From: Macrostomum hystrix
Lineage: Eukaryota > Animalia > Platyhelminthes
Assembly (NCBI GenBank): GCA_950097015.1
Contig: CATNEN010000007.1
Span: 10,974,001-11,038,000 of the forward strand
Reading direction: 5' to 3'
DNA: 64,000 nucleotides
The notes beneath the pieces were generated by a model. That model did not search any database, was not told the origin of the DNA, and worked only from the letters and a program-made list of their open reading frames with translations. A program made the translations under genes and the position numbers. Positions 1,537-34,018 of the stretch are shown here, piece after piece (the stretch's first letter is position 1; each line of letters starts with the position of its first letter).

Positions 1537-1928
1537 TCTATATATATAAAAGTGAAAACTCTGTGTGTGTGTCTGTGTGTGTGTGTGCAACCTTTTGTCT
1601 TTATAGACGCCGAAACCGCTCAACCAAATCGCACCAAACTTTGCACATACCTAAAACCACCTACGCTGAGTGCAATAGGCTACTCAAATTCCCGAAAAAT
1701 CATTTCCTTCCTGCTCAAAAGTGCAAAAAACTGCTCAAAAATCGTCAAAAAATCACTCAATTCGACATATCGTCGCCCCACTTTGTCAGATTTTCTCCAA
1801 ATTTGATCCACTTACACTTTACATGTTTTCCAACAATGCTGTCAATTTTGAACATCTCTACTCAATCCAGAGCAAAGCTGCATCATCTCAAAGTGAGTCA
1901 CTTTTTGTTTTCCGAGGACAGCCACCCC
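1537..1928 (+). mobile_element. Helitron 5' terminal segment
   Basis: Begins A|TCTATATATATAAAAGTG, followed by a (TG)n/TGTC microsatellite and AAACCGCTCAACCAAATCGCACCAAACTTTG, the typical 5' end of invertebrate Helitrons. A matching helicase remnant and CTAG|T end lie at 34019-35374. Confidence 0.65.
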
Positions 1929-1970
1929 AACTCCCCTCCGCCACTCTGCGGGCCAAATTTTACAGTCTAT

Positions 1971-2071
1971 GGCCGCGGGCTAGCCGGCCCCAGCTCATGC
2001 GTTTATTATGCGCCTAGCCAGGGTGCCCTCATGGTGAGGTGAGCTGGGCTAGCCGATCGCAGCTCATGAGC
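1971..2071 (+). repeat. Left subterminal inverted repeat with three CTAGCC-N7-(G/C)CTCA modules
   Basis: GGCCGCGGGCTAGCCGGCCCCAGCTCATG...GCAGCTCATGAGC aligns to the reverse complement of 33767-33868; CTAGCC occurs at 1980, 2014 and 2049. Confidence 0.75.
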
Positions 2072-2166
2072 CCAGCCCATGGGCCCAGGGTGCGCTCCTG
2101 GTGTGGGCCTCGGATATGGGATAGGAAGGTGACGGGGGGGAGGAGGAGGGGGAGAGGTTGCCCATG

Positions 2167-2430
2167 AGGGCGGATAGCTCAGTCAGTAAGGTGTCGGACT
2201 CTGGATCAGATGGTCCTGGGTTCGACTCCCGACCTAGTCTAGAACTATTCGTGCAGCCCTTGGCAAGCTGCTTTGCCCTGATGTGCACACAGTCTACTCA
2301 GCTGCAGATGAGTACCGACATTTCGTCGGGTAATAATAATTCTGGCTGGCGTGGAATAAAGCAGTTCTGTGCGGCAATTCTGTGGGGTTCGGATGCTGCC
2401 GATATGTTTGGAAAAATAAATTCTTTAAGA
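2167..2430 (+). mobile_element. tRNA-derived SINE
   Basis: A box TAGCTCAGTCAGTA, B box GGTTCGACTCCC and CTG anticodon-like loop, followed by a SINE-body-like segment (CCCTTGGCAAG...CTCAGCTGCAGATGAGTACC) and an AT-rich tail. The 3' boundary is approximate. Confidence 0.7.
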
Positions 2431-2444
2431 GTTTTCTTAATTTA

Positions 2445-3405
2445 AGAGTTTTTCAAAACATATAGGCTATCCTACTGTATGTGATTCCTTTGGTGCTTCG
2501 AATGTACTGTATAGTGCTGATATTGATGTAAATCAGCGTAAAACCGCTTTTTTCTTACTCAGCCGGATTAAGAAATGAGTAGGCTTATATGATGTTCTTG
2601 TTGTTCTGCAAAACATATAATCATTAATTTAAATAAAAAATGAGTCGAACCAACGACCCGCAGTTATCAGGCTGACGTGCTACCAGTTTCACCACTTGAC
2701 ATTGCCCATATACAACGAAGAATTACTATTTATTAGTATATTCTTTCGTTCGAATACTTTTTCAGAGTTTTTCAAAACATATAGGCTATTCTACTGTATG
2801 TGATTCCTTTGGTGCTTCGAGTGTACTGTATAGTGCTGATATTGATGTAAATCAGCGTAAAACCGCTTTTTTTCTTACTCAGCCGGATTAAGAAATGAGT
2901 AGGCTTATATGATGTTCTTGTTGTTCTGCAAAACATATAATCATTAATTTAAATAAAAAATGAGTCGAACCAACGACCCGCAGTTGTCAGGCTGACGTGC
3001 TACCAGTTAAACCACTTGACATTGCCAGTTTACAACGAAGAATTACTATTTATAAGTATATTCTTTCGTTCGAATACTTTTTCAGAGTTTTTCAAAACAT
3101 ATAGGCTATCCTACTGTATGTGATTCCTTTGGTGCTTCGAGTGTACTGTATAGTGCTGATATTTATGTAAATCAGCGTAAAACCGCTTTTTTTCTTACTC
3201 AGCCAGATTAAGAAATGAGTAGGCTTATATGATGTTCTTGTTGTTCTGCAAAACATATAATCATTAATTTAAATAAAAAATGAGTCGAACCAACGACCCG
3301 CAGTTATCAGGCTGACGTGCTACCAGTTTCACCACATGACATTGGCCAAATACAACGAAGAATTACTATTTATTAGTATATATTCTTTCGTTCGAATACT
3401 TTTTT
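2445..3405 (+). repeat. Tandem repeat, 3 x ~320 bp
   Basis: AGAGTTTTTCAAAACATATAGGCTAT starts at 2445, 2764 and 3084. Confidence 0.95.
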
Positions 3406-5380
3406 GGCTGCAGGCTGCAGCTTGTGCTTTCTTATTTTAAGCAATGGCCATCGTAGCGATCAAATTCGCAACGCAATATTAGCAACGCAAGCAAATATAT
3501 CGCGAGCTAGCGAATCGCTCCATTATCTAACGACGGGTCCAGCAGGTCCCCAAATTTTATCTGCAAAGCTTCAAAAACCAAAAGGGTGAACGTCAATATT
3601 ACAAATTTATTACAAACTCAGCAAAAGTCAAAATTATTAGCACCCGTAACGAAAGTCATCGATTTATCGTTGCACCAAACATTCTACTTATTTTTGTCAT
3701 TGCATGTAATCCATAAAGTTTTAAATAAAGACCAGCAAGGCAAAAATCATTATTTTTAAAGCATAAAAGTAACTTAAAAGAAAGGTTGAAGCGAAAATAG
3801 TTCGCTAAAAGATTTTTTTAAACACATACTGCATAAAAACGGCAAAACAGCGTTTAAATTTTGTAGGGTACGAAGTGCAATGCCTCACACCAGTATCTAA
3901 ATGTTTTACTTTGTTTAGAGTTACATAAAGTTTCCGGAACATTTAACCTTTTCGACAGAAATCAACATGATAAATAATCGACCAATTTATAAATCTAATT
4001 GATGCAAAGTCATTGCATTCTGTTGCAAAAGCAGTATAATCGCACGAGTTCAACCTACTGAAACATCGATTTAGTTAATTCATCTACAAATATTATATAT
4101 TTTTAATAAAAGTGTCTGAGCTTTCGTGTTCTGCTACAAAGTAGGGAAACCGTAAGAATTTCTGGTATATTAGGTCTTAATTTAATAATTCTCGAAAAAC
4201 CAAGGTATTCCAAATAATTAGCTACGAAACACATTATTTTCCTTTCTTGAAGATCGGCTCGATATTACCCGCAACTTACGTATGTAAACCGTAACGTACT
4301 CGTAGCGTTTGAGTTTAAAAAAACAAAATCGTAATAAAGGTATAGGCTACTTAATACTGCTTTGAAAAAACAAATAATTATGTTCTTAGACATATACATA
4401 AAGAAGGCTCTGCAGATTTTTTTGGCGCGGTTTAAATAATTTCAGATGCATGTTCGTCGGAGTTGTCCGCCATGTTGTTTTTAGCTTTTTCAAATTTTTA
4501 TTTTGAACTGAATTTTAATTAATTTAGTAATTTAATTTTCTCTTTGAATTCAACTGAAAGTGAAAGACAGGTAAATCGGGACAAAAAAGTACAAGATTGT
4601 ACCAATTGCAATCATTCCACATTACTGTTACTTTTTCTAGATTATTGCCACTTTGGTAGCTAATTTCGTTCTTCGTAAATCGTAATTAAGGTTAAAAACA
4701 AAAATATTTGTATTGTTTACTTCACTCTTCACTTAGTTTTGGACAAATCAGAGTCATTTGCACAAGGTAATTAAAAACTCGATAAATGTCTAAACAATGT
4801 CAGTTGGAAAATAACATATGTCGCTATATGGCAAAATTACATGGTTAATATGATGTAATATAACACTCTAGATAGCTAGTATTGAATAGGAAATATTATC
4901 TGACTATCTTTGGCAGGTTAGAAACTAGTTAACTCGGCAGTAAACCAGTACTATAGCTAGTGCCTATAAGCATTTACTCATATTTAGTTAACATTGAAGA
5001 TGGGTTAATCCAAAATTTTGTTAGAGGTTGTGCCAGTGTGTATTAAATTAGAAACAGTTGTCCGACTATAATATTCACTTTTATTTATTAAGTTCTGCTG
5101 CTAGTTTCTTTGCATTTCTTGCTTAACAGTGTACCAAGCTCTGCAACTTTTTATGAAGCAACAGTCACTAATTTCATTTGGTCTTTAGACCTAGCCTCCT
5201 AGCCTACTTCCAGAGTCAAAAAGGTGGCTCTGTGTGCCAGAAAGAAATTATAAACAATGTAATAAGTGACATGCACCACCAATATAAGTAACTTTAACAT
5301 TGAGTCAAGTAGGCTTTGGTAAATAGTAAATAAAGTAAATAGTTAATAGGGCAAGATCTCAAAAAAACTAATGCATACTC

Positions 5381-5814
5381 GGCAATGTTTTACTTCCGTT
5401 CGTTATATTATTTTTTCGTTTGAATTGACATGGCTTTGCCGTGACTTGACACTTGGATCTATGTCTATGGCAAAATCTGGCAAATATGGGGGAACAGGAA
5501 GCTTAGGCACAGAAATTCTGCAGCTGAAGATTTTGTGAAGGCCAAGCTGCGTCAAATGCATGGCACGAATGCTGCTCTATTCGAAAGCCACCTCAAAGAA
5601 TTCTTATGGCACTGTCTATACCCCAAGAATAGCTTCGGTGCCCTCCTCTACTGGATTAGGCACTTACCCGGTTTGAAAGAAGAAAGACTGACCAAGACTT
5701 TTCAGAACTGTCTGATCAAACTACAGACTTATTGTTACCGTTAAACTTGTTTTTGTCGTTATCTGTCATTTGCAAATGAAAAAATAATATAACGAACGGA
5801 AGTAGAACATTGCC
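5381..5814 (+). mobile_element. Non-autonomous Merlin (IS1016/IS1595-like) DNA transposon
   Basis: ~36-bp TIRs GGCAATGTT(T/C)TACTTCCGTTCGTTATATTATTTTTT; perfect 8-bp TSD GCATACTC (5373-5380, 5815-5822); residual ORF 5535-5744 (KAKLRQMHGT...FESHLKEFLW...FGALL) resembles the Merlin transposase C-terminus. Confidence 0.85.
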
Positions 5815-6420
5815 GCATACTCTTTGCACATAAAGGCTTCTTTCCAGTGGACCTTGAACTTAAGATCAATATTTATATCGTAAATAGTGAAATTGAAATC
5901 TTGAAATCAATCACTTGAGAAGGTATTCGACTGAGATTAGTGGCAATCCATTGGAGGATTAGAGAAGTCCATGCTGGTATCAGTATCAGACAGGCTGATC
6001 ATCTAGGCAGAATAGCTGCAGCTGGACACTGCAGCATGACAGTCTGGCCCTGGCAAAGCTGAGCAAACTGCCACCCCAAGTCTGCCAATCTTTGTCACAT
6101 TCCATGGAGTCCATGGGTGGCAGTAATGTGTTAATTTGTGAGAGTGAGAAAAAGGGATTTGTGTGCAAATTTTTAAGTAAATGTTCAATTCTTTATATTC
6201 AAGCAAGTGTATAGAAATGACGCCCAAGTGCAGGTCAGCAATCTCCACAGACTGTAGTTACATGGCCACAATACTTGTGGGAATATATGTTGAATATAAG
6301 TGCTATGATTTCATTATAGAATATATAAAACTTTATAGTATTAAATAGAAAACAGTTGTCTGTCTACAATATTAAATACTGTAAACCAATGATTATAAAT
6401 TACTTTCTCATTTCCAGACA

Positions 6421-8868
6421 ATGTATCGCGGCATCGAACTGAAGCGTGTTGTCAAAGCTACACTGCAAACTGGCTGTCGTGGGCGACCCAGAAAGATTAA
6501 GACAATCATTAGCGGCCGAAATCGAGGCTCAACATCTCGGCGTCCTGTGTCTGAAACTACTCCTGTTCCAGTGGAAGCTAGCACCGAGAATGATGTCGGT
6601 ATGCCTGAGTCTTTTGCTCCTACAGTAGAAGATGTTGAATGGGTAGATTTTGACAGCTTTGCTGAGAAATACAGAGGTAGTTACGAGAAGCATTTTCTCT
6701 TAAATCTGTGTTCCTCTTGCTATGAGCACGAAGGTGTATATCGATGTGTTACTTGTCGACTTAGCTTATGTGCCAGCTGTAAGAATGAGACGCATAAAAA
6801 GTTTTCAGCCCACAAGTTTCTCATATGGAATAAGGAGAGTCTAATGTTTCAGGAACTGGATGCTACTCACGATGCTTTTGAAATGTTTTGCTGCGCTTCT
6901 AGTAAATTGAATCTGAATGTCTGTGCGGCTACAAAAGTTGACCTTATAGATCTGGCTGGAAGCGTAAAGGTCATTTTTATTACCTGCGACTCCTGTGATC
7001 TTATTGGTGCACTCCTTTCTCAAGGGTTCTTCCCTTGTTGCGAAGGGTCAAAGCCTGATTCAGATGGGTATGCATTCTTTTCTTTTACCTTTTTGTCCCT
7101 GCTAGACAGTTTGTGTATGACTGGGCAGTTGCCTGTTCACAGAGCGGTCAGTACACTGCTCATTGGGCCAACTCTGGGACAAGGTACATATAATTTGGCT
7201 CTTGTAAAAAGCACTTATCAACGCATTCAACGACATGATGTTTTGCTGCGGTTTCGCCACCTGCAAATGGCCTCAGCAAAATGGCCAAATAATTGTCTTC
7301 TCTGTCCAGATAATCACGCTGTGCGCAAAACTGTTGTCTGTGCAGATGCTCTATTTGGTTGGCAGCGCTTTAAAGCCAGGGGGCGTACACAACTGGAAAT
7401 ACCATCAGATGGTCGTCCATTACCTACGCCGCTTGTCTATGTAGATATTAAAGCGGATGTGCCAAAAAATCGAGCAGAGGAACAGAATTGTCCTAATTGG
7501 AAGGCCGGTGCTCATGAACCATTAAGCCGTGAGCAGAGACATGATGTCACGGGTTTCTTTGGATTATTCTGTCGTCACAATCGCCTTTTGTGTGGCTCAA
7601 ATATCACAACTGGTGGAGAAAAGTTTTGCTACCTGGAACAGTGCCTTGAACACTTTCTGCGAAACGTCAAAGTGTCTAAGGAATTACTTGTCGTATATGA
7701 CGTGGGTAAGTTTATTATTATTTTATAAAATGCATACAATCTATGAAATACTGTTGCTTGTGTACAGTTATATGACAACATGACTTACTCTTTATCCCAA
7801 TTCACAGGCTGTCGCGTATCCAGCCGGGTTAAATCCGCTATTGCGAAGTCTGGTGCCAACATTCAAGCGAGTAGCTGTGCAATAAACGCTTTTCATGCTC
7901 TTGGTCACCTGCCCAGTTGTCAAAAAAAGTTTTCTGTTCGCGTTACTCCAGGCGCAGGTCTATGCGATGGAGAGAATACTGAGCGAGCCTGGTCTCAACT
8001 CAGGCCGTTCGGTAAGTTTTTAAAGTACATGCGGAAAGACCGACGAGCACAATACATGGCGCATATTCTATACTTCTTTAATGCACAACAGCTTCTTAGC
8101 GCTTCTGGGTGGTTTACACAACGTATTAAGCTTATGGTAGGTGCGGGAAAAAGCATTCTAAGTGAACTAAAAGAGCTACAAAGCCAGTCTGCGATTTTGC
8201 AGCACTCGGGGGTCCGAAATGACAGTCTGGTCATCTCTGAGGATGAAATTTTGGATTTAGGCTCCCAATGGTATGAAGATTCCCTCCGAGTAGCTGTACA
8301 CAACTCGGAAGATGATATCCTATGTGAGCTACGCGCTCTTGCAGTGCACAGAGATCATTGGAGTAAACAGGTTGGTAAGTCAGTTGGCCAAAGTCAAACC
8401 AGAATGTGCTTGCGAAAGGTTAAAAGTTATGCATCCGACATGAAAAAACTCTACGCTCGTCTTCCAATTGAAGACAGAGCTTCTTTCGATGAATATAAAA
8501 AACCGCGTAGTGCGAAATATGAACATTTGTCTGGAACCGACCTTTCCATCCGATTTCGTCAGCGGGCTATAGACGTCAGTAACAAATATAAACGCCTAAA
8601 AGAAGAAGCGCATATTATTTCAGATGAGTGGGTTGACCTTCAGGTTAATTTGCAGAGCCTCTGTGATGACTTAGCGAATCAGCCGGGCTTAGCCGCTCAA
8701 TTTCGGGAATTGTTTAGAAGACTGCTTGAAGATGTTGCAAGTAAAAGCGTGACTGATGCTGTAAAATATCTTCTTGCGAATAAATTCTCCCTCAGCACAC
8801 TGAGTCAGAGCGCTAATGAAGCGGTTGCTTCAGAAGATTCGGAGTCTTCTGATAGCGACTCCGATTAA
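6421..8868 (+). CDS. KDZ (Kyakuja-Dileera-Zisupton) transposase with N-terminal Cys-rich (CxC) region; exons 6421-7705 and 7808-8868, 781 aa
   Basis: Splicing a GT-AG intron (7706-7807) restores YDVGC. Other KDZ motifs present: CADA, GxxxxxCRH, GEKFCY, FHALGHxxxC and GLCDGENTERAWS. N-terminal CxxC...RCxxC...CxxC...H...H cluster. No stops. An acceptor (TTTCCAG, 6417) hints at an upstream exon. Confidence 0.85.
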
Positions 8869-8940
8869 GTATCCAACCAGTGTACTGATGATTCCACCGT
8901 TACTTGTGTTTTTAATTGAAGTCAAGCGCTGCCTTGTAAA

Positions 8941-9619
8941 GTCACTCTGCACCTACTTTTGTGTGGGTGCTGTGAAGCGTTAAGTTTAAGATCGCTAAAA
9001 TTAATACCATTAAGCCCAAAATTTGGACACATTTCTTTCAACTAGCAAATTTTTTGCAGGTCACTTTGCACATGCAATACAATGTGCTGTGAAGCGTTAA
9101 GTTTAAGAACGCTAAAATTAATACCAGTAAGCCCAAAGTTTGGACACATATTTCTTTCAACTAGCAAAATATTTACAGGTCACTTTGCACATGCAATTCA
9201 ATGTGCTGTGAAGCGCTACATTTTAAAGCGCTATGAGCCCATGTGTCAGCCTTCTCGCGGCGGACTCGTTGAGCGCGAATAAAATCTGCTAATTACCGTG
9301 CGCTGCCAATCTTACCGTGCATGTTTGCACTATCCAGCGGACTGGCAGTGTACTTACGTTAGCTGTTTTTATTCGTGGGACTAATGACACTATTAAATTC
9401 GTTCATTTATCAGCTTTTCCGTTCAATTCCGTTTTATTATTATTATATAGCTCACAGTTTCATTGTCTGTCAAATAAATGGAGGGGCTCCTAAACAGTGT
9501 TTCTCGTTCTTATTTTTTCATTGCTTGCCGTGCCTGATAAACATGTTTTCCTTTTTTAGCATTTACATACTTGCGCCTATATACGTCACCGATTTCAGCG
9601 AAACGCAGGCAACTTAAAT
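8941..9619 (+). repeat. Intergenic repeat block copy 1 (with internal ~118-bp duplication)
   Basis: Near-identical to 10785-11345 and 12202-12650; contains AATAAA (9278), polypyrimidine-AG (9546-9559) and CCTATATA just upstream of ATG 9667. Confidence 0.95.
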
Positions 9620-9666
9620 AAACTCTTTAAAAAATCAAAATTCAGATTTCAAATTCAAAAGACAGC

Positions 9667-10679
9667 ATGCCCACTGATAAGCTCGATTGTCCGTTATGTC
9701 TTCCTGGTTTATCTGCCTATTCGGCCAGACCTGACAGGCTCGCTCTGCATATTGAAACGCATCATCCAAACGCGAAAGGGAAGACGGAATGCATCATTCA
9801 ATATCTACGTTGGTCGAAGAAGGCCGATGCAAAATTGTGCCAGCTATGCGATACATTCTATGTACATTTGCGGCAGCACTATAAGCTGATTCACACCATC
9901 GAATTCCGGCGACTTAACACTTTGCTGACAGGTCAACCAGCCATGCGACTCGCGCGAAAGCGTGGTGTTAAACGTTTTGGTGAAATATTCTGGTGGTTTA
10001 CTTCCAATCAGCCGTTGCCAAACTATCCGTCCTCAGATGGCGACTGTGTTGGAAAGCTGGAAGAACAAAGGTAATTAATTTGTGAAGGGCATGTCACGAT
10101 CTCATTTAAAGCTTAGTTACGTAAAATGCAAACTGCCTGTGCCATCTGTATTTTCTAAGTCTTGTCAACACTTCCCACAGGCACTGCGAATCTTCTGCTG
10201 GCCAACGATCATGCATAGATGTCTACAGGAAAAGTTCAAATTTCGTCCCAGCCAAGGTTTTAGTGAAGCCTTCTGGTGAGAAGGGTCTCGGTATTTTTGC
10301 TGGTGAACTAATTAGAGCTGATTCATTCGTGTGCTTCTATGGTGGCACCGTAATATCTAGAAAACAAGGACTCGCCAGAGAGCAGGAGAGGGCATCTAAA
10401 GGCGAGTCACCTTGTTTTGCGTTTTTCTTTTTTTATGGCTCCCAATCGCTTTGCGAAGATGCTACTGATAGTTTTTCCCTTGGTCGGTTTATTAATCACA
10501 GTCGGTTGACTCCAAATCTAATGCCAAGGGCGATACCACCATGTAAAGAAATCGGACGGAACGTCTGCAGGATCGCTTTTTTTGCTATTCGGGACATTCT
10601 AGAAGGGCAAGAATTGCTCTTCGATTATTCTGAAACTGACGAAGAGTGTCTAAAGAGGTTTCCCTGGCTGCAATCTTAA
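9667..10679 (+). CDS. Double C2H2-like zinc finger fused to PR-Set7/SETD8-type SET lysine methyltransferase; exons 9667-10070 and 10181-10679, 300 aa
   Basis: A GT-AG intron (10071-10180) joins the two ORFs in frame. CPLC...HxxxHH and CQLC...HxxxxH fingers. SET motifs KGLGIFA, FVxxYxG, CEDAT, LGRFINHS, RDIxxGQELLFDY and C-terminal PWL match KMT5A/SETD8. Confidence 0.85.
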
Positions 10680-10784
10680 AAGTTCAAAAAATTGTACCAA
10701 CTAGTCACTGCTAATCATTTTGAATTTGTTGCACATGCGTCAGACAAATTTCTTCAAAACTTGTCGCATAAAACATTACAGCAG

Positions 10785-11345
10785 GTCACTCTGCACCTAC
10801 TTTTGTGTGGGTGCTGTGAAGCGTTAAGTTTAAGAACGCTAAAATTAATACCAGTAAGCCCAAAGTTTGGACACATATTTCTTTCAACTAGCAAAATATT
10901 TACAGGTCACTTTGCACATGCAATTCAATGTGCTGTGAAGCGCTACATTTTAAAGCGCTATGAGCCCATGTGTCAGCCTTCTCGCGGCGGACTCGTTGAG
11001 CGCGAATAAAATCTGCTAATTACCGTGCTCTGCCAATCTTACCGTGCATGTTTGCACTATCCAGCGGACTGGCAGTGTACTTACGTTAGCTGTTTTTATT
11101 CGTGGGACTAATGACACTATTAAATTCGTTCATTTATCAGCTTTTCCGTTCAATTCCGTTTTATTATTATTATATAGCTCACAGTTTCATTGTCTGTCAA
11201 ATAAATGGAGGGGCTCCTAAACAGTGTTTCTCGTTCTTATTTTTTCATTGCTTGCCGTGCTTGATAAACATGTTTTCCTTTTTTAGCATTTACATACTTG
11301 TGCCTATATACGTCACCGATTTCAGCGAAACGCAGGCAACTTAAA
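10785..11345 (+). repeat. Intergenic repeat block copy 2
   Basis: GTCACTCTGCACCTAC...GCAGGCAACTTAAA, nearly identical to copy 1. Confidence 0.95.
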
Positions 11346-11386
11346 AAAAACTTTAAACTTCAAACTGTAAACACACAAAACTCATC

Positions 11387-12121
11387 ATGCCCAACAAACA
11401 CGCGAAAGTGTCCTGTCTTGTCTGTTCCAATTGGACTGGTAGATCCTACATGCTTTGGAGGCATTGCGAGAAAAGGCACCCCGCTCTGGAGGATGACAGG
11501 ATTCAGGCGATGATTGACTTCGCGAAGGCGACTTCAAAAGCGAAGCCGGTGTGTCTCTGTCCGATATGCGGGGCTCTGATTTCTCACCAAAGAGCGCATT
11601 TTAAGAGATGCCACGTACCTGAATATGGCTCTACATACCGCCGCAAAGCCCTCTCGGGTCGTGCGGCTGTCCTGAAATTACGCGAATCAGGTTCGCGGCG
11701 TGTAGCAGAACTTCACAAACTTGCTACAGAAGAAAAGCATCCACTCCAATACATGGAACTTGAGTTCGCTGCTAGTCAGCTATCTATTCTGGTTGAGATG
11801 TACAAGGATATCGGCGAGGTACAAATTACATCAGCAACTAGCCAAGAGACGAGTGCGTCAACAAAACTTCCCGCAGAACAGCAGCAGCAGGAAGAGCGCT
11901 GCAACTCTTCTGAAGGTGCTCCTAAAAGTCCTAAACCTACGCCAGAAACTCATCGAGTTCCAGCTAAAATCTGTCGAAACCCATTACCATTTGTGATTCC
12001 TCCAAGAGTCCCTTATTGCGTCAAACCCTTACCGCCTATTGTCTTGCGTAAATCTGCTACCAACTTGACCCGATATAACCCGAAAATTCCCACCTCGTCT
12101 CCCATAAAAATTGCTACCTGA
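11387..12121 (+). CDS. Double C2H2-like zinc-finger protein, paralogue of the 9667 N-terminus, with Pro/Lys-rich tail
   Basis: CLVC...HCEKRHP and CPIC...HFKRCH fingers, then LSGRAA..LRESGSRRVAE aligning to LTGQPA..ARKRGVKRFGE of the 9667 ORF; same position downstream of the repeat block. Confidence 0.7.
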   Translation: MPNKHAKVSCLVCSNWTGRSYMLWRHCEKRHPALEDDRIQAMIDFAKATSKAKPVCLCPICGALISHQRAHFKRCHVPEYGSTYRRKALSGRAAVLKLRESGSRRVAELHKLATEEKHPLQYMELEFAASQLSILVEMYKDIGEVQITSATSQETSASTKLPAEQQQQEERCNSSEGAPKSPKPTPETHRVPAKICRNPLPFVIPPRVPYCVKPLPPIVLRKSATNLTRYNPKIPTSSPIKIAT

Positions 12122-12201
12122 GGTCTTCCTGTTGGAACAAAATACCATACCACCCCTATCCCATGGAAAAATTGGTATATCGACAGAGCCAATTACAGCA
12201 A

Positions 12202-12650
12202 GTCACTCTGCACCTACTTTTGTGTGGGTGCTGTGAAGCGTTAAGTTTAAGAGCGCTAAAATGAATACCAGTGAGGCCAAATTTTGGATACAATTCATTC
12301 AACTAGCAAAATATTTACAGGTCACTTTGCACATGCAATTCAATGTGCTGTGAAGCGCTACGTTTTAAAGCGCTATGAGCCCATGTGTCAGCCTTCTCGC
12401 GGCGGACTCGTTGAGCGCGAATAAAATCTGCTAATTACCGTGCGCTGCCAATCTTACCGTGCATGTTTGCACTATCCAGCGGACTGGCAGTGTACTTACG
12501 TTAGCTGTTTTTATTCGTGGGACTAATGACACTATTAAATTCGTTCATTTATCAGCTTTTCCGTTCAATTCCGTTTTATTATTATTATATAGCTCACAGT
12601 TTCATTGTCTGTCAAATAAATGGAGGGGCTCCTAAACAGTGTTTCGCGTT
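12202..12650 (+). repeat. Intergenic repeat block copy 3 (3'-truncated/diverged)
   Basis: Matches copies 1 and 2 up to CCTAAACAGTGTTTC, then diverges. Confidence 0.95.
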
Positions 12651-12914
12651 TTCGTTTTTTAATTGCTTGTTTTTTAGATGCGCTTTCTTTCTGCTCATTA
12701 GTTGGCTGTGCAGGGAACAACTAGGACAAATGGAGATAGATGTGCATTTGAGAATAGACTGCCTGCTTTATACAATTATATGCATGGCAGATCAATGTCC
12801 TTATTAGCGTTTATATATTAGCGTTCACGCCTTCATTTAGGGTCTAGCTTTAATTGTCAACGTTTCAAACTTCAATCTCGAATAAATTTCAGGCCAGCAT
12901 CACTTCCATTGAAA

Positions 12915-12959: not shown

Positions 12960-13409
12960 ATTGGGATGACGTGCGCGATGTCAACATGATGACGTGCGCG
13001 AGCATTCAACACAATGGAAATGACGATCCATACAATTTTTTAGGCGGTGTTTCTGGTCTTTCAACCGTTGTGACCAATATTTGAAGAAGCATCTTGCTAA
13101 CGATATTTTAGCTTTTATAACTATTTGCACAATTAAAGGTACGTGGCTACGCACTTCTACGCCTTTAGCCTTGTCTAATGTCATTTTTCAATTCCCTCCA
13201 GTCGTCCAAGGCGTTTTGTTGTTATGCGAACTCGGCCAATCTGACTTCATAATTGCTTCATATGCGTTCATATGCATACAAGTGTGAATGCTCATATGCG
13301 TGTGTACACCTTTCGTGTCTGCTTGCCTGCAATCCTACTTGTGCATGTATTTGACTTACCTATAGTCATTACACTTAGCTAGAGTAATTTAGCCCAGGTG
13401 TGGCAACAA

Positions 13410-22850: not shown

Positions 22851-23012
22851 GGCAATCTTCGGCTGAATATGCGGACTTTGACTATAACTATAAATCAACT
22901 ATATAATCAACTGTAAATAATCAACTAATAATCAACTAATAATCAACTATGAATATTCAACTATATATAATATTAAAATATCCTAAGTCCGCAGATTCAG
23001 CCGAAGATTGCC
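22851..23012. mobile_element. MITE-like element with 28-bp terminal inverted repeats
   Basis: GGCAATCTTCGGCTGAATATGCGGACTT / AAGTCCGCAGATTCAGCCGAAGATTGCC around an AT-rich ATAATCAACT-repeat core; no clear TSD. Confidence 0.6.
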
Positions 23013-23066
23013 CGATCTAAGGCGTCTTAGTCTTAGGCGTATTCTTCTTCTTTTTCTCTCCGCGAC

Positions 23067-23105
<39 letters not shown>
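23067..23105 (+). repeat. (GGC)n microsatellite
   Basis: Visible directly. Confidence 0.95.
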
Positions 23106-23108
<3 letters not shown>

Positions 23109-25277
23109 ATCCACCATATTCTGGAATTTTGCATTAAATGCAAATTTTTTTATAAATGAGCAATAACAATAATGTGTTGTAAGGCATGCTCTGTGGAAAA
23201 GTTAGCCCATTTAAATGGGCATCAGAAAGTCAGAATTAAAATGAGATTTTTTATGACCGAGCAACAACAGTTATGAAACGACTTGCTTTCTAGGAAATAT
23301 GGTTTCTATTCTGCATGTTATGAGGGACCATTTAAATTAACGTTTCGCGGTCAATTTCTATGAAGACAAGGGTTACGTCAAGTTATAAATTGCTTGTTTC
23401 ACAGTATAAAAGCGAGGCATTTTGTGAAAGCGGAGAATATTGAAATTTAGCAGAATACAATATGAAGTAATGTGCAGAGCTGGACAAGTGTTACTGCTAA
23501 TCACAGGCTTGGGGAGGCAGTATGAGTCTGCTGTTTGTTTTATGTTTGACTTGCACAGTCGAAGTGTTTGACTCAAACAATATGAATCTACTGCTCTCAA
23601 CCCAGTGCCGATGTCCTAACTTGTCAGCTTGGCTCATAGCTAATATGTGACCTGCTATGATCATCACTAAATGAATGCACCCTCATTCTATTCACGTATT
23701 AAAATGTACACCTCTAAGAGTATAAAGTTTCAGTGTATTATAAATAGTGAGCTATCCAAGCCTTTTTACATAGGCTACAGAGTTTATGCTTATCTTAATA
23801 AGTCTTAATATTAGGAAAAAAACTGTATAGTGGGTCTATACGCATAGCTTATTGGCTGGCCACTCGTCATAATTGTATAGAAACAATGCATTATTCTAAA
23901 TGAAATTAGGACCCAGGAATATAAATTCTTATTAAGATTTCCAAGCAACTACTGGGATATGGGATCTATGACCTGGGAGCCTAGGATCAAGGACTAGTAT
24001 TGCCATTGCAGTTTGGCCTTTTTTCTGTAGCCCTAAAAAAATTCCGCAGGGCTTAATTCTATGATTGAATTGATAATTAGTGGAATATGTAATCCAAAGT
24101 AAACTAATTGACTATTGTATATCCACTTCCAAAAATGGTATTATCAGTATGGTATACTTGCCAATTTGCACCCACTTCATAGGTCACATATTTAAAAGAA
24201 TTGTGCTTTTAAATGAAAGATTGAATAAAATGAGGGGAAGAAATAAGAAAATTGGAACCAAAGTCTAACATCTGTCATCTATAGGGTAATGTATCATCAA
24301 CCAAACAAGAATGTGTATTTTTTAACTTCGAACCTAAGCTACAGATTTTCTATTTAAGATATGATGATAAATCAAAAGCCAAGTTATAGAAAACAGTTAC
24401 ATCTTTCTAAAAAGTGTCTGCTTTTGCTATTTTGTCAAATAGAAAAAAGTTATTCCTGTAACTAGGTTTCATCTAAAACCTAACAATGATTTTCATGTAT
24501 CTTCAAACCAAATGGAGAAGTTGGTGTTTGGTTTTACAATTTGAGTGAGTGGTTTAATCTTATTTTGCCATATGAAGTGCTGTCAAAGTGTAGACTACAA
24601 TTCTGTGTAAGCTAGAAGGATAGGAATGTGAGGGATGGGAATGTGAGTGAATAGGAATGGGAGGAAGGGAAAAGGATCCCTGTGGCCCCGTGGCACTTGG
24701 GTGCCGCAGCCCCTCATGCAGCAGCTACATGAGTTTAATACTCTGGCACCTTCTATTTGCTGCTGAGCATAGCTCACACAGGTAGGAAACATTGGCAACT
24801 ATAAAAATTTCTGCTACATATTTTTAATGCCATCCAAACAAAAATAACTGCCTATGTCCCATAGCTACTGAACTTGAGCTCTGAGTGAGCATGGACATGG
24901 TCAGGTTTATTAAATGTTTTTAGTGGGATCACATTTTTCACATTGCTTGAATGGGGAGTAGGTTATCTAGGGAATATAAGATCTATGGACACTGACCTAT
25001 TAGGACAGGGTTGGTAACCATTTTTATCTTGTAGGCCAGATAGAGATTTGAGCACATGGGTCATGGCTTATGAACACATGGAAGAAGTGGAAGTGTAAGT
25101 AGAAGAGTAGAAGCTTAGAGGGTGGAGTGGAGAGGAGGCTGCATTGGGTGGGGTTGGGTTTGGTAGATTTGGGCTAGATTTAGTAAGCCATGCAAGTAAA
25201 GTATGGGGTAGATATCTGCTCCTGTCCTGTCTGTCTACCTGTCTGTCTGCCTACCTGCCTGCCTGCCTGCTTGCCTG

Positions 25278-25590
25278 AGGGCACTGGTCCCCTCTATAAC
25301 AGGGGGGCACTGACCCCTCTCTAGCAGGGAGGGCACTGATCACTCTAGCAGGGAGGGAACTGGCCCCTCTAGCAGGGAGGGCACTGACCCCTCTCTAGCA
25401 GGGAGGGCACTGATCACTCTAGCAGGGAGGGAACTGGCCCCTCTAGCAGGGAGGGCACTGACCCCTCTCTAGCAGGGAGGGCACTGATCACTCTAGCAGG
25501 GAGGGAACTGGCCCCTCTAGCAGGGAGGGCACTGACCCCTCTCTAGCAGGGAGGGCACTGACCCCTCTCTAGCAAGGAGGGCACTGACCA
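25278..25590 (+). repeat. 23-26-bp minisatellite (CTCTAGCAGGGAGGGCACTGACCC) with 72-bp super-period
   Basis: Tandem copies visible directly. Confidence 0.9.
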
Positions 25591-27615
25591 CTTTCCAATC
25601 CCACGATCCCCTTTCCAATCCCATGATCTCAATTCTAATCCCATGATCTCAATTCTCTCCTCTCTGCCCCTTACTCCCTCCTGTCTGCCCGAATTAAACA
25701 ATGAACAATATAAACAATCCACAATACGAAAATAGTCAATAATATAGTCAACAAAATTAGCCATTTTTAATAAAAGAAACGAAATAATGATGTTTAGTTG
25801 TTCCTTGGTCTTTAATAAAGAGGAGAGTTAGGGAGAATGCGATGAGAATATGTTCTTCTCAGAGTTCTTCTGTTTTTCTCAATCTCAGATAGTCTTTGCA
25901 AAGCTCAACGTTATAAAAATAAAGATGGACTAAAGTTTATTAGATTCGATAAACAATTTTCTTTCTTAGTGGAATCAACAAGTCCACTGTCTAATGACAA
26001 AATAGTTTGAGAGTCGAGACTGAACGAGCGTCTTTTTCTGGTCTTGTGTTAAATAGATGGTGTGATATGCAGGACACCATAATAGGCAAGCCAGGAGCCT
26101 CAAGACAGAGAGGACACGCGATTATGGGGTTTGGGAAATGGGGTGGGTGTCATTAAATGAATCACAGCGAATCGCACGCGAATATGGGGTTTTGGGAATG
26201 GGGTGGGTGTTAAATGACTGACAAATATTTTTGGTTTGGAAGGATCGATAAATTAAACGGCCGTTAGTTTGGCTCGGTGTGAGAAGGGTTTAGTCAAAGG
26301 ACCCCTATATAGCAGCATCTGCACTGGAAGCTAAACGGAAAAGTTTAGTTTGTAGTTAAAATTAGTAGTTATTTGCAAGGACTACTAGAGTAGAAGGACG
26401 CGACACTTGAAGACTATGTAAATTTTATTAAAGGCCACTTTTCTAAGCGATGTCTTTTTTAAACGGATGCACATAGAAATTTACTTTTTTCGCTGGGACC
26501 TTCGAAATTTATTGCCCTTGAAGATAAAATACATTTGCGTCTGGATAAACATATTTTTTAAACTCGCTAATCTGATGGCCCCTGCTACCCCTGATGTGGG
26601 ATAACTGCTGAAGTGGGATAACTGCTGCACTGGGAAAACTGCAGAAGTTGAATTACTGGATGAAGTTAGATAACTGCTGAAGTAAGATAACAGGTTAAGT
26701 GGGATTACTCCTGAAGTGGGCTATCTGATGAAATGGGATTTCTGCCGATATGGGATAACTGTAGATGGGGGATAACTGGTGAAAGGGGATAGCTGCTTAA
26801 GGGGATATCTGATGAAGTGACGAATTTAGTTAGTGACGAATTTTTTAATAACTGAATAATTCGGGGCGGCTTAATTGCTATTCACATTCTAAAATTAAAA
26901 TTTGGACTGGAAGCGGAGCTGATATCTTCCTTTTTTCTAAGACTTGTGGCCAATAAAATTGCCCGATTTACACAGGGGCAGGGCAGATAGACAGGATCAG
27001 GCACACATAGACAGAAAATAGCGTATATATTTTTTGGCTGGACCGACTTTTCCAAATTTTTGCTTCCCCAGAACTCACCAAAAAGCGATGCCGCCGCCTC
27101 CTGGCGGCCCGCCCGGGCCCCAATGCCAGGGCGGCATGAATCCAAAATTTCTGCAAAATACAAGGCCTTCTGGCAATTGAATTGATTTAGAGAATTCCAT
27201 CATTAGCTGTGAATCAGACAAAAAATTAACTTACCCTCGGCAAAAGGCGGACAAGCTCCGGAGCTTTACCTGCTCCATCAGGAGCAGGTAAGCTCGCACG
27301 CTGTCTCTCTGCAAATTTATAAAACAAAAAATATAGAGCAAGGACGAAGGACGGTTGTTAGTACAATCCTGTATAACTGATAAACGGGGATAACTCATGA
27401 AATGGGATAACTAATGAACGGGGATGATTGCATGATAAAGTCAATAACTGAAGAAGTGGGATTTTGGAGAAGGATTTGGGATCAGAGAAGGACTTTGGAT
27501 CTGGGATTAAAGCTGTAAATCCCAAAACCCCGAATCAACGAATAAATGCATATTTCTGCTATTGACTGCACTGAAGAATTAATTTATAAAGTTAGGAGGG
27601 TCACTGTCAACAGCA

Positions 27616-28161: not shown

Positions 28162-30036
28162 CTGAAATTATGTATTGCAAAACTCGTTAATCACGCAAAT
28201 TATGTTTCTTGGAAATTAACAAATATGATTCAAGGAAGTGTTGTACCAGTAAACTAACGGTGAGGTAGCTATAGCAGTATATGTAAGTTATAGGTGAGTT
28301 TGTCAGTTCAAATATTACCTGGCCTCTTTGGACACATGAAAGAGTTTTTCTTTTCTAAGAAAATACCAAAACTTTGCCACTTAATAGCTTTATTGTTTAA
28401 GATAATCATACTTGATTTTCTTCATCAAATTCTTAAATTTTTTCTTTGACTTTACTAAGTTTAATTTTACTCTAAAAGTTGGGTAAAGTTTAGCACTTTA
28501 ATATACCAATGATCTAATATCATGCATAGAAGGACAAATAATTTGGTTTCTGCATTAAAAAATTCGAATTTTTATATAAAAAATTAGATAGAAAGTCAGA
28601 TACAACAAACAGTAGTACTAATGTAGGATCACATATATCATTTGTGTGAATTATCTATGTGAGTTTCTTGTAAACATTTGCTATAGCATAGCTATAGCTA
28701 TGCCCTATGCGAATCTTTAAAAAATTAAAGTCTCTTTTGAAGAGGACAGAACAGAAGTAGCTAGTCCTATATGAAGAAACTAATTTCTTAGCTTAAATTT
28801 AGCTATTATATGTTTTTATTGGAATAAATGTTACAGTTACAACCCTATTTGGCTAGAGGAATTCCTTCAGTTTAAGGATGGAATAAATATTTATATTTAG
28901 ACATAACTAGCTATGCCTATAATCAGTGCTGCTCTTATTTTCATAGACCAAATTTAATAATTTAATAACTAAAAATTTCCTCTCCTTGCTATCTAATTAT
29001 ATCTATGTTATCTATGTTATCTATCTAATTATATCTATGTTATAACTAGGCATAAATTCAAAATTATGGCTTTTTAGTCTAAAAATGAGAACTATACACT
29101 CAATATAGTTGCCCAGGGTTTGAAAAAGAATTGAATATTTTTTCAAAGTTTTGTATTCCTTGAATGAACTTATTTAGTCTCCAAAAAGACAAAGTCTTGA
29201 GTAGACCTTCTAGTCAAATAAAAACTTTTCAATTGTTTCAGAATTCAAGTAAATGTCTTGTAACCCTTTTATTATGCAAGATAATTTCATGAATTTTGTC
29301 CACATGAAGATAACATGAATGAAATTAGAAATATCAAATAAAAAGCAAGTAGAACATGATTCAAAAGGGAAAAATAATGGCTCTAGGAATATAGTCAGGC
29401 TATAACATTGCTTTGTATCAATTTTTCTTATGTGTATATTGAACTAGCAAAGTGAAATAATAATTTAAGATCAAATAGTAGAGTAGACTATATAGCTACT
29501 TGTTTAGAAAGGGAAGCAAATAATTATTTTGTATATGTTGGTATATGTAAAACATAATATATATTGGTAATTTTTAACTGGAATTGGCTCTCTATTGTAA
29601 ACATTTTTATAATGCTAGAATACAAGGTTATCACCTTGTATAGTAGCAAAATAACTGTATACAAAAGATTATCAGGCACACCAGATGGCAAATATGGATC
29701 TCAGATTTAAATAGTGAGTTGACAGCTGACCCTACCTATATTTTTATCCATTTTTGCCAAGCGAGAAGGTTTCCAGAAGTGCCCATAGATTTAGAGTGCA
29801 AGGTATTCAGAGCTTTGGTCAATTTTTAAGACTTTAGCTTCACAGCACTATGTTAAATGCAAGTGGTTAAAATGAATACAGCACATAATAGCTATATCAA
29901 TCTACATTAAAAAGCTTTCTACTGAGGCTTACAGCACTTCTAAAGAGTGCAATGTACATTATCCTCATTGATTTTAATAGCACATCTATAAAGTGCAATA
30001 TACTGAACTGTTTTATTTAACAATTTGCAGTCTAGT

Positions 30037-31172
30037 CTATCTAGGAAAAAGATGGACTGTCCTACTGTTTGGCTGTTGTGAGATAACATGTTCTTCAGCA
30101 GCACTTTGCTGTGTCATATGTGACAGGCTTGGTAATGAAAATTGTAAAGGTACCTGAGGAGGTACTTGAGACTCAGATATCTGTATTTCATCTGGCAATA
30201 ACATACCTGGGTAATAATTCTGCGAAAACTGAGCAAGACGTAGGTGACTATGTATTACTTGATTTTGAGAACTTCTAAGTTGCTGCAAATGAATGTCTTC
30301 TAAATAAGCATCTGGATTTTGGAATAAATTGTCAATACTATTGATATTTGAAGTAGTATTGTTGAGACTGGTAATATCATTGACATTACTTTGTGATGCT
30401 TCTGCACTTTGACTACATTCTTCATTGAGGCTTATCTCAGCCTCAGCAGCATAGTCATTTTGCTGTGTAGCCACTATTGCAGAATCATTACCATTTGCAC
30501 TAGTACCTTGCATGCCAACAAGCAATGCTTGATTTTGGTTTGCTAGAGTACCTTCAGTGCTAATTGTAGGTGCTACATTTCTCTCATTCCATTCTGAATG
30601 AGACCAAAATTTTACTTCACCATGATCAGAAATTGCCTGAAATTGTGCAACACATTGCTGTTGGTTAAGATTATGGGGTGAAGAGAAGTTGGGAATAAAA
30701 CGTCCTGGCCCTTTCTTCTGACCTGTAGCTAAATCAGAAGCTATAAGTGCCCATTGAATTGCACCAGAGTTGCCTGCCCTTTCATAAGCGTCCTTAGCTA
30801 TTTTACTAAGCTCTTTGCGCATGTAGACAACACCCTTTTTAATAATTTCTTCAAACTTTCCTTCTGTTTGAGGAAGCTGCTGCAAATTTTGAAGCCTGTG
30901 TTGCGCTTGCTTATCTGCTCTTATAAAATCAACAATAGAACTACATGCTTCTTGGACCTGTCCACTCAAAGTGCCAGTGACATCTTTAGAACAGTGATAA
31001 ATGGCTCTGTCATGTTCAGTAATTCTAATAACAATGTAAGTTTCTTTATGTTTGTCCAAGTCCTGAATGATTCTTTTAATTGGGCGAGGTCGATTTTTAG
31101 CAGCTTTTCTTAGTCGTTCTTTTTTTGCTATACTTAGACCCCTATACTTCTCTAGCAATGCTGAAGTCCAAG
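30037..31172 (-). CDS. Uncharacterised protein, large terminal exon (>=373 aa), probable transposon accessory gene
   Basis: 1.1-kb stop-free frame in AT-rich DNA; CATTTCAG acceptor at 31173; basic helical N-part (EKYRGLSIAKKERLRKAAK) and Q/S/N-rich disordered tail. Confidence 0.55.
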
Positions 31173-33305
31173 CTGAAATGAAGAAGTATATGATATTAAA
31201 AATATTTAAACGAGATTTCCACTAAACTAGGCTTTTGTCCAGAACTGCAAGAATTAAAAGTGAGGCCATGCTTAAGGTAATCTCCCCTTGACCTCAGGGG
31301 AGAGAACAACACCATCACTGAATTAACTGTTTAAATATAAAATGAAAAATTAACACCCAAACCAGCATTATGCATGAAAGCATATTTACCAAGTTTTTAA
31401 GGCAGTCACCCATTTTTTAGAAACTAAGAAAGCTGCCCTTTTCCTTTTTCCAGTCAGCTGTACAATTCTGAACAAAAACCAAGTTCGTAGGTGCAGAAAT
31501 GCCCAATTCCTTTAAATCTTACTGTATATAAAACACTTACTAGCACAGCCCTTCTTTCGAAGAAATTCATTGCCGCTAGTAGGTCCCATCTAAAATTAAG
31601 TTTTTAGCAATATGTAAATCAAATGTCTGTCACATGAACTATTTACCTACACTTCATTGGCAAACTATATATTTTTGGAGTCTATAGGCATGTCAAGTAA
31701 TACCATATTATAGGGCCACAAAATGGTCAAGTTAGAAAATCCAAAACTGTAACATGTCACCATTGCTATTAATAGGAAAAAGCATAAAAAATTCATGAAA
31801 TACAATTTCGAATTCTTAACTTGAAAATTAGTTCTACTTTGAAACTTTTTCTTCAGGAATTATTTAGCATGGGCATGGTGAATTTTTTGGTCTTGGAACA
31901 GCTATTTAAGTATTCTATAGCTACCAGTGGGACTGATATATTCATTTCCTTGAAGGTACTCTTAACAGGCCCTAGTCAAAACACATGCTGCACACATTTC
32001 ACAAGCTTTGAGTTTTTTCAACTTTTAAAGAGGTAATCACAGTTTAATCATGGTTTTCTGTTTTTGCACTAAATATTGATACTAATACATTTTCCTCAAA
32101 CATTTCCAGCCTGCCTTGCTTGCTGCCTGACTGTTCGCTTGTCAACATTATGGACTCTAATGGACGACTAGGTCTATGCTGTCAAACTGCCATTGTCTGG
32201 TTCTAGGCAAGCCTCAAGTTACTGCAATACTTTTGCTCTCAGAGCTAGCTACTATCAGCCTGCAGCTCGACTCTTTGGACGAGCGTGAGTTAATATTGAT
32301 TGCTTTTGTGAAAGTTACAGTTCAATGTGAATTCAAATGCAATGGCCCTCATTTTTTATAAACAGGTGTTTTGGCCCTATATGGTCCCATTCTATTAATG
32401 CTACATGCTAATACCAATAATTAAACGAGGACTCGATTCCATGTGATTCTCAGATTCTCCTCTCTACATCAGCCTCGAGGAGACATGCCCGCTATGGTCA
32501 GGCATTTTCCTTATATTTAACACACTGACTTTGACAAATAGAGGCTGTTCCTGTTTCTAACTTTCAATTACATTCAAATTCTGCCGCTTTCCACAGTGCT
32601 TTTTTCATCTGCTCTCTCTCCCGATCTCTCCGTCATTCCCCTTTTCTCCTGCGCCAGATGCAGAGTAAGAACGGCTAACAGTTGATACTACTCCTCATCT
32701 AGTAGTCTGTGTCGCAACTTTTCTGTATTGGTTTGACTGAAATATTCACTTCCTTGAAGGCACTCTTAACAGGTCATAGTCACAGGCCACAGGGCATGTT
32801 ACATATTTCTCCGGGCTGCAGGTGTGGGTGCACTGATTAAGAGTTGGACTATCTAAGATTTGACACCTTGATCTGAATGGCGTAGGCGAGGGGGTCATAC
32901 TAGCTACTAGTAGCCGAACACTAGTAGTATGGGTTACCAGAAATCTGCCTAACACAGGGGAAATAGGAGAGCGTGCATTTGAATGGGAGAGGGTGGCCTA
33001 TACTCTGCATATAGGATAGGTGACGCTGTGACGATCTATGTGGCTGAGGGGTTGGAGCCCCATTACAATTACTCAACAGAATTCTGAGCACCAAAAATTA
33101 GCGAAAATTATCAGCATGAGCTTGCCGTGACACCCGAGACAGTAATGACCCCTGGAATGGATTTCTAGGCTATGTATGCCACTGTTTAGATCTGCATGAA
33201 AAGCTTGTTTAGCAGGCAGCATTAATGAGCTATTACTACTATAAATATTGATAGTAATATTTATAATACCAGCAATTTCCAACTATGTAGATTATTATAC
33301 AGCAG

Positions 33306-33475
33306 TAACAAATATGGATTGATTTTGACATGCCACAAACTCTTACAATACATTATTACAAATACGAAAATATTAAACTGACATGGGTCAAATAACAAAT
33401 ATGGATTGATTTTGACATGCCACAAACTCTTACAATACATTATTACAAATAGGAAAATATTAAACCGACATGGGC
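33306..33475 (+). repeat. Tandem duplication, 2 x ~87 bp
   Basis: TAACAAATATGGATTGATTTTGACATGCC... repeated. Confidence 0.9.
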
Positions 33476-33766
33476 ACCTAAACTTGGCTTACCTGTCAGT
33501 TCTTATTTGAGCTAATAAAAAAGGTTTCTATTTAACAATTCTAGCTAGTATAGGATATAGAATTAGATTTAAAGTTTTGACTCGACGAGCTCTTTACTAT
33601 TCGAGTTTTGGTGGGAAGAGGAAAAACAGCTCGTTCCCCTTTGTCCCCCGCTCAAATAGGGATGTATGGCACCATCGTCTAGTTCGTTCCCAAGTTCGCG
33701 TAAACAACCCCTCCCAGCCAACCACGCTTCATCATGGGGTTCCCACGCTTCACGTTCCCACAGGGA

Positions 33767-33868
33767 GCTCATGAGCTGCACTCGTCTAGCCGGACTCATG
33801 GCACGGTGAGGTGACCTGGGCTAGCCGTCTAATTTTTACCGTGAGCTGAGGCCGGCTAGTCCACGGCC
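33767..33868 (-). repeat. Right subterminal inverted repeat
   Basis: Reverse complement GGCCGTGGACTAGCCGGCCTCAGCTCACG...GCAGCTCATGAGC aligns with 1971-2071. Confidence 0.75.
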
Positions 33869-34018
33869 GTTAGGTGAAATTTTATTACAGCCACCCCCTC
33901 CCTTCCCCGGGCGCCGAAGCCCCAGACTGTACATTGTATTTCAAGCCGTGAATGTACACAGCCCAAACCCCTAGACTGTCTACTGGCCCCCAAGCAGCAC
34001 TGAGACTGAGTGCGGTGA

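Follow-up and report, generated by a model that had tools for sequence, protein, structure and literature searches.

Evidence for a giant, recently mobile KDZ-superfamily transposon with passenger genes inside a Helitron of the flatworm Macrostomum hystrix

Within the KDZ superfamily of transposons, Zisupton and Dileera elements produce target-site duplications of 8 bp, and Kyakuja elements are recognized by 7-bp duplications and CA..TG termini (PMC12730594). The KDZ1–3 elements of Cryptococcus, which measure 6.4–10.9 kb, have been called 'gigantic' (bioRxiv 10.1101/2024.08.15.608186). KDZ elements are not mentioned in a 2019 review of giant eukaryotic transposons (PMC6431247), and a literature search found no paper tying Macrostomum to them. 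The locus described here lies in a stretch of 64,000 nucleotides from M. hystrix (assembly GCA_950097015.1, contig CATNEN010000007.1, positions 10,974,001 to 11,038,000), referred to as the window. Judged by its genomic copies, the interval 1963–33876 of this window is a real, recently mobile DNA transposon of ~32 kb, and its features place it in the KDZ superfamily, apparently nearer to Kyakuja and Dileera than to other lineages. It is regarded as a giant animal KDZ element with accessory genes lodged in a Helitron on four grounds: its copies are flanked by different duplications, empty sites occur, the transposase is intact and expressed, and the passengers are expressed as well. Together these lines of evidence strongly support the original prediction, made from the letters of the window, of a single element of this kind.

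The boundaries of the element and the two halves of its target are as follows.

1537–1962, plus strand: 5′ part of the target Helitron-like repeat, TC after A; 40 scored genomic copies at 99–100%
1955–1962, unstranded: left copy of the 8-bp target-site duplication, AAATTTTA; empty-site flank matches overlap by exactly 8 bp
1963–2075, plus strand: left terminal inverted repeat, beginning CAGTCTATGGCC; sharp similarity boundary in more than 20 copies
33765–33876, plus strand: right terminal inverted repeat, closing with GCTAGTCCACGGCCGTTAGGTG; three motif copies 35 bp apart
33877–33884, unstranded: right copy of the 8-bp target-site duplication, AAATTTTA, adjoining the right terminus
33885–35374, plus strand: 3′ part of the target Helitron; Pif1 2B fragment, hairpin and CTAG end

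The element spans 31,914 bp between 5′-CA...TG-3′ termini, and its ends read CAGTC...AGGTG. The imperfect inverted repeats of ~100 bp that had originally been noticed are present: a repeat search pairs 2005–2071 with 33767–33833 (73% complementary), and global alignment pushes the repeats out to the termini at 1963 and 33876, a length of ~110 bp. Copies were sought in the genome of the same animal (220 Mb in 42 contigs) with the element ends and internal segments as queries, and sister copies were compared by segment searches and a few short sequence pieces. Similarity among these copies starts at CAGTCTATGG (window 1963) without exception among the left ends examined and always halts at ...GTTAGGTG (window 33876) on the right. 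A motif of ~20 bp, GGCTAGCC...CAGCTCA, recurs in both ends: on the left it stands twice in direct and once in inverted orientation, on the right three times at 35-bp spacing and in opposite orientation. These copies are candidate transposase-binding sites. As the bases directly outside both termini are AAATTTTA, the duplication is 8 bp long. The 11-bp direct repeat ACAGCCACCCC (1918–1928 and 33887–33897), earlier taken to flank the element, was ruled out as the target-site duplication by comparison with copies and uninterrupted Helitrons: both occurrences are native Helitron sequence and lie outside the termini.

The interrupted repeat displays the features by which Helitrons are recognized, namely a 5′ TC, a hairpin followed by CTAG, and insertion between A and T; it is present in hundreds of copies. 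Its 5′ boundary, A/TC at 1536/1537, reads A/TCTATATA..., its 3′ end reads ...TGCCCC-loop-GGGCA-A7-GCTAG/T (CTAG/T at 35371–35375), and a Pif1 2B helicase fragment is detected by Pfam in the open reading frame (ORF) 34019–34714. The proposal that the flanks are one Helitron split by the element is confirmed by the 5′ TC, the Pif1 2B fragment and the CTAG end. Excising 1963–33884 gives an uninterrupted Helitron of 1,916 bp, in agreement with the ~1.9 kb expected, but removal of the interval bounded by the 11-mers, as first suggested, would also take away ~45 bp that belong to the Helitron. The genome has 358 matches (at most 2 mismatches) to a 28-mer that bridges the empty site, against none for a reversed control, and at many loci the left- and right-flank matches overlap by exactly 8 bp, for example C1:26473633–26474058 and C1:26474051–26475564. 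The uninterrupted copies that the original prediction called for are therefore present in abundance; they hold ACAGCCACCCC twice, not once, with a single AAATTTTA in between. In addition, two independent Helitrons that host a sister element elsewhere run unbroken across the insertion point of the window.

Further pairs of inverted repeats, another expectation of the original prediction, are found in the same genome. At least 20 left ends and at least 21 right ends are present and pair at spacings of 6.5–46 kb. At least 11 of these pairs carry distinct direct duplications, six of 8 bp (AAATTTTA, CTATAGGC, TAAGAGCT, GCAGGGGA, CGAAGTTA and CTCTCTAT) and five of 7 bp (GTGGCGG, CTGCGGG, CCCAAGC, GGAAGGC and GCCTCGG); the length was verified against an uninterrupted Helitron for four copies, three with 7 bp and the window with its 8 bp. 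The KDZ gene region is represented by at least 15 copies at 97–100% identity, six of them at 100%, and the right arm by at least 12 genomic copies. Several copies are 99.9–100% identical across 2.6–8.9 kb, and a 10-kb piece of the copy on contig C25 matches the window at 99.92% over 8.9 kb. The history of the family is further illuminated by a miniature inverted-repeat transposable element (MITE) nested within the element.

5381–5814, unstranded: nested 434-bp MITE with 43-bp inverted ends; 8-bp duplication GCATACTC at 5373–5380 and 5815–5822

Many free copies of this MITE exist elsewhere; it resides inside the 8 youngest element copies, whose flanks differ, and is missing from older ones. The whole unit of ~30 kb must therefore have kept moving after the MITE was gained. 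Nearly all copies lie on contig C1 (27.56 Mb), the others being confined to C5, C7, C25 and C26, together with a left-end fragment on C38 that shares the junction of the window, breaks off after 276 bp and was excluded from the independent count. Internally deleted derivatives of ~6.5 kb stand in tandem at C1:3605776–3620388 (right end, 564-bp spacer, left end, repeated), and partial left ends are triplicated at C1:3457916–3458337.

The gene on which movement would depend occupies the left part of the element.

6417–8968, plus strand: KDZ transposase gene; coding sequence 6421–7704 + 7807–8868 (428 + 353 codons); intron 7705–7806; spliced-leader acceptor ag/6417

The coding sequence is intact, comprising 781 stop-free codons over two exons, which were searched and aligned one at a time, never as a joined protein. 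The KDZ domain is found in ORFs 6421–7728 and 7780–8868: against the Pfam KDZ profile (PF18758, 217 positions, cut-off 26.6 bits) exon 1 scores 38.6 bits over profile positions 3–125 and exon 2 scores 59.9 bits over 125–214. A weak B-box match precedes it towards the N terminus. Exon-wise alignment with nine homologues indicates that the window keeps all invariant residues, including the Cys/His clusters and the acidic residues. The closest relatives are multi-copy proteins of 808–830 amino acids from Macrostomum lignano (PAA68011.1 with 54% and PAA74961.1 with 45% identity over exon 1), followed by Priapulus and Tubulanus proteins at 25–28% identity, and these distant relatives match CxC1/CxC2 above cut-off. 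A HMMER scan with exon 1 retrieved 14 proteins at E 0.001 among 1.84 billion representatives. Relative to two 97%-identical copies, the KDZ exons differ at 37 synonymous and 49 non-synonymous codons, a higher synonymous share than the roughly 1 in 5 seen in ORFs of the middle region of the element; the KDZ genes of older copies contain stops and indels. A Pfam search of element ORFs of at least 70 amino acids recovered no other transposase domain, hAT included, in keeping with the prediction that the sole intact transposase inside the element is of KDZ type. No EnSpm domain was seen either, and the window lacks a Hes-type WRPW motif in all frames. A second, distant KDZ family, with 68% nucleotide identity over 317 bp (window 7805–8121), is spread in at least 12 copies over many contigs (for instance C39:1209846, C38:26298554 and C34:1199943).

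Downstream of the transposase gene, and on the same strand, two passenger genes alternate with near-identical spacer blocks.

8941–9631, plus strand: spacer blocks B0/B1, ending in the acceptor gatttcag/cgaaacgc (9591–9598/9599)
9599–10814, plus strand: zinc-finger–SET passenger gene; coding sequence 9667–10068 + 10179–10679 (300 codons); intron 10069–10178
10781–11357, plus strand: spacer block B2, 97% identical to B1; same acceptor
11387–12121, plus strand: second passenger gene, a zinc-finger protein of 244 codons; leader-bearing contig from 11459 on
12192–12669, plus strand: last spacer block B3, truncated; transcribed sequence runs on beyond

The blocks at 9056–9631, 10781–11357 and 12192–12669 show a mutual identity of 96–97% and separate three co-oriented genes; each full block closes with the acceptor gatttcag/cgaaacgc. 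Expression of the array was followed in assembled transcriptome contigs from the runs X4 and X6, both belonging to a single study. The GT..AG joints 7704/7807 of the KDZ gene and 10068/10179 of the SET gene occur in contigs of both runs. A leader, TGCGAAGACTCAATTTATTGCAT, stands at three transcript 5′ ends, namely 6417, 9598/9599 and the contig starting at 11459, and AG acceptors precede the leader sites at 6415–6416 and 9597–9598. These 23 letters equal the 3′ end of the published spliced leader of M. lignano (PMC5173321) and, together with the closest relatives of the transposase, identify the host as a Macrostomum flatworm. A 16-mer of the leader has 38 genomic occurrences, partly in tandem units of ~11.6 kb (C15, C17 and C42; at C17 positions 2766, 14411, 26056 and 37701), which are probably leader RNA genes within a larger tandem repeat. 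Upstream transcript contigs stop ~30 nt within a block, at 8968 and 10814. In the region 11326–11459 of the window, transcript contigs join the leader plus CGAAACGC straight to 11459 and leave out ~120 nt, the ATG at 11387 among them; the gap marks either a GC..AG intron or a deletion carried by a different copy. Run X9, which is labelled as another organism, also contains short pieces with 99% identity to window 8220–8372, 9245–9487 and 10545–10789; these could reflect presence in a related species or sample carry-over.

In the first passenger gene a zinc-finger exon is joined to a SET exon, the latter recognized by Pfam with an E value of 1.3e-15 and best matched among solved structures by 4ldg (3e-19) and SETD8/KMT5A (1e-14). 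By these matches the SET domain of the cargo is SETD8/KMT5A-like and is predicted to be histone methyltransferase-like, and the role of the protein in the element is likewise a prediction. Within window 10600–10679 the SET exon reads ELLFDY, as does the aligned 4ldg. At least 20 further SET8-like ORFs, 31–41% identical to the cargo SET exon and several of them with identical scores, are scattered almost entirely over C1 (C1:3999791–4000198, 15910628–15911035 and 18151899–18152306 are examples); they appear to be carried as cargo by other repeat families. The second passenger protein (11387–12121) has no Pfam match. The passenger content varies between copies: six hold both genes, the copy at C1:19.42 Mb only the SET gene and that at C1:19.18 Mb only the zinc-finger gene. 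The copy at C1:18.68 Mb possesses spacer blocks without passenger genes, and that at C1:23.19 Mb a different zinc-finger gene at the same place together with a 7.4-kb foreign insertion.

The distribution of insertions is uneven. Among ~21 independent left junctions, seven map to positions 408–614 of the Helitron, in both orientations and at different bases. A different repeat contains two further insertions 4 bp from each other, and the ends of sister elements contain two or three more. The stretch of 210 bp, multiplied by ~358 Helitron copies, makes up ~0.03% of the genome, and simple arithmetic puts the chance of seven hits in 21 at ~1e-19. It is the GC-richest part (50–66%) of the first 650 bp of the Helitron, and its comparison with the element ends yielded only chance 7–8-mers alike. 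Together these observations point to a preference of the element for a GC-rich stretch of an abundant 1.9-kb Helitron.

The favoured reading, to which a probability of about 85% is assigned, holds that 1963–33876 belongs to a family of giant cut-and-paste elements (6.5–46 kb) of the KDZ superfamily in Macrostomum; the family would be young and autonomous and comprise multiple copies. The KDZ protein is its presumed mobilising enzyme. This protein, in which B-box-like and putative CxC-type zinc modules stand before the catalytic domain, would bind the ~20-bp motifs in the ~110-bp ends and move the whole unit, cutting the target with a 7- or 8-bp stagger. The passenger array, in which each gene is preceded by a block of 480–580 bp, is presumably read as one unit: the preceding mRNA would terminate ~30 nt into each block, and the same block would provide the acceptor at which the following gene receives its spliced leader. 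The variable passenger content, with copies that have 0, 1, 2 or different passenger genes, would be explained most simply by recombination between blocks.

Several points weigh against this reading. Mobility is read solely from genome copies and junctions, and expression from assembled contigs of one study. The CxC1 match upstream of the KDZ domain reaches only 15.6 bits, below its cut-off of 26.9, and a mixture of 7- and 8-bp duplications has not been described for any single KDZ lineage. A retention bias may add to the Helitron association. Finally, 8-bp duplications and CAG termini are typical of hAT elements too, and a fungal hAT subgroup with 7-bp duplications exists. The unit might thus be mobilised in trans by another transposase, for instance of hAT type, with the KDZ gene as a mere passenger. 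This appears very improbable, given that no hAT or other transposase domain was detected in the ORFs searched, that the KDZ gene is both intact and expressed and does not differ among the youngest copies, that CA..TG termini with 7–8-bp duplications fit KDZ lineages, and that the second terminus read inward is CAC, not CAG. Spread of the copies by segmental duplication or repeat recombination, without transposition, would account for their concentration on C1, the tandem deleted derivatives at C1:3.60–3.62 Mb and the C38 fragment with the junction of the window. For the bulk of the copies it is already contradicted by 11 copies with different flanks and their own 7–8-bp direct duplication, by similarity that ends at the same base in all copies and by the 358 empty sites, and it can be given hardly any credence.

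The clustering in Helitrons admits a different alternative, according to which it reflects tolerance or retention of insertions, or local hopping in a repeat-rich contig, instead of active target choice. Insertions into repeats are probably neutral, and C1, where most element copies reside, is rich in repeats, Helitrons among them. Tolerance alone, however, should scatter insertions across the whole Helitron and other repeats; the confinement of seven independent insertions in both orientations to so small a fraction of the genome, and the pair only 4 bp apart in another repeat, make this explanation unlikely, and a retention bias would not explain the narrow focus. The favoured reading of an autonomous KDZ family can also be extended. 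In its boldest form the element would be a mobile gene-cassette platform: one leader-resolved, co-oriented array of exchangeable chromatin and transcription regulators (SETD8-like and zinc-finger), shuffled through its blocks and shaping local chromatin, for which the Helitron segment would act as a safe harbour. This extension is a tentative one, conceivable but doubtful.

The remainder of the element consists largely of sequence outside supported genes.

2168–2440, plus strand: tRNA-derived module resembling a short interspersed element (SINE), with A and B boxes; in all copies examined
2441–3404, unstranded: 320-bp internal satellite, 3 copies here and 2–3 in sister copies
13409–14324, unstranded: 91-bp internal satellite, 10 copies
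15076–19162, unstranded: 142-bp internal satellite, 29 copies; in most family members
19200–27000, unstranded: conserved middle region, no supported gene; 88–98% identity in many copies
28958–29541, unstranded: 584-bp block, in 6 copies only
30040–31221, minus strand: orphan ORF (394 codons) whose first 132 codons lack an in-frame ATG; conservation extends to at least 12 copies

The satellites and the SINE module had been thought to be later enlargements of the element. They belong to the architecture of the family, because they recur in most or all copies with varying repeat number, and the only lineage-specific additions are the 434-bp MITE and the 584-bp block; of the hAT insertion that had also been proposed, neither an insertion nor a remnant was found. 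ARAGORN (tRNA) and Rfam scans of window 1–37000 made no calls, the SINE-like module included. The middle region (19.2–27 kb) has no Pfam matches and no synonymous excess relative to a diverged copy. For the orphan ORF no Pfam match and, within the searched length range, no homologue was obtained, and its single-sequence AlphaFold model (mean pLDDT, the confidence score of the model, 34) is unusable. A sister copy contains, at C1:23200084–23207510, a GC-rich foreign insertion of 7.4 kb with a 370-codon ORF. Beyond the Helitron, the GC-rich part of the window includes ORFs with HD-domain matches (E ~1e-5) at 41300–41803 and 58555–59040, both on the minus strand.

Cut-and-paste transposons are thought to become less efficient as the distance between their ends grows. 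An animal KDZ family of 26–46 kb that moved very recently stretches this size limit, since the KDZ elements described reach ~11 kb at most, the largest being fungal. It is also evidence that a DNA transposon of an animal can carry functional, host-like genes, a histone-methyltransferase-like gene among them, a parallel to the TET/JBP genes borne by KDZ elements of fungi. The array of leader-acceptor spacers offers a possible route to multi-gene expression from a compact transposon unit. The target preference, if real, would be of practical interest as the property of a large-cargo, site-preferring transposase in a flatworm amenable to transgenesis.

Among described systems, the fungal Kyakuja and Dileera elements (Kojima 2025, PMC12730594) bear the closest resemblance to the Macrostomum element, sharing a KDZ domain placed after a CxC-type zinc module (putative in the Macrostomum element), 7- or 8-bp duplications and CA..TG termini, as well as additional ORFs and chromatin-related cargo (TET/JBP in fungi). 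Unlike the fungal elements, it is three to four times longer, resides in an animal and mixes both duplication lengths; its cargo consists of SETD8-like and zinc-finger genes, not TET/JBP, and large internal satellites and spliced-leader processing are further differences. When set against Kyakuja in particular, the termini fit, as do the 7-bp duplications seen in about half of the pairs, but clear imperfect inverted ends of ~110 bp are present where inverted repeats are reported absent. With Zisupton, known from fish, nematodes and other animals (Bohne et al. 2012, as presented in PMC9297572 and PMC12730594), the element shares 8-bp duplications, inverted ends and a multi-exon transposase. In the accounts available, the Zisupton protein reaches ~1,400 amino acids with CxC4 and SWIM modules, in contrast to 781 codons here and relatives with CxC1/CxC2 and B-box, and these same accounts describe no cargo array. 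Neither exon, nor the closest relatives, have a Pfam match to SWIM or CxC4, and membership of Zisupton in the strict sense was rejected on this ground and on the length of only 781 codons.

A length of tens of kilobases and several non-transposase genes are features in common with Teratorn, Polinton/Maverick, the enlarged EnSpm elements of red algae and the fungal Starships, none of which is reported with a leader-served array of genes and spacer blocks (PMC6431247). Those giants rely on other enzymes (piggyBac; retroviral-type integrase and polymerase B; EnSpm; tyrosine recombinase, respectively) and have other ends and duplications. Bacterial integron arrays and the operons of nematodes and flatworms comprise co-oriented genes with repeated junctions and variable gene number, and the downstream genes of operons are matured by a leader. 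By analogy, the element has co-oriented genes between repeated junction sequences, in numbers that vary from copy to copy. In contrast to integrons it is devoid of an integrase and of attC-type sites, and in contrast to classical operons its spacers, at ~500 bp, are far longer and the array is known from gene layout and contigs. The Macrostomum element is thus set apart from known KDZ elements by differences in size, host and cargo, and also by its internal architecture and its target preference.

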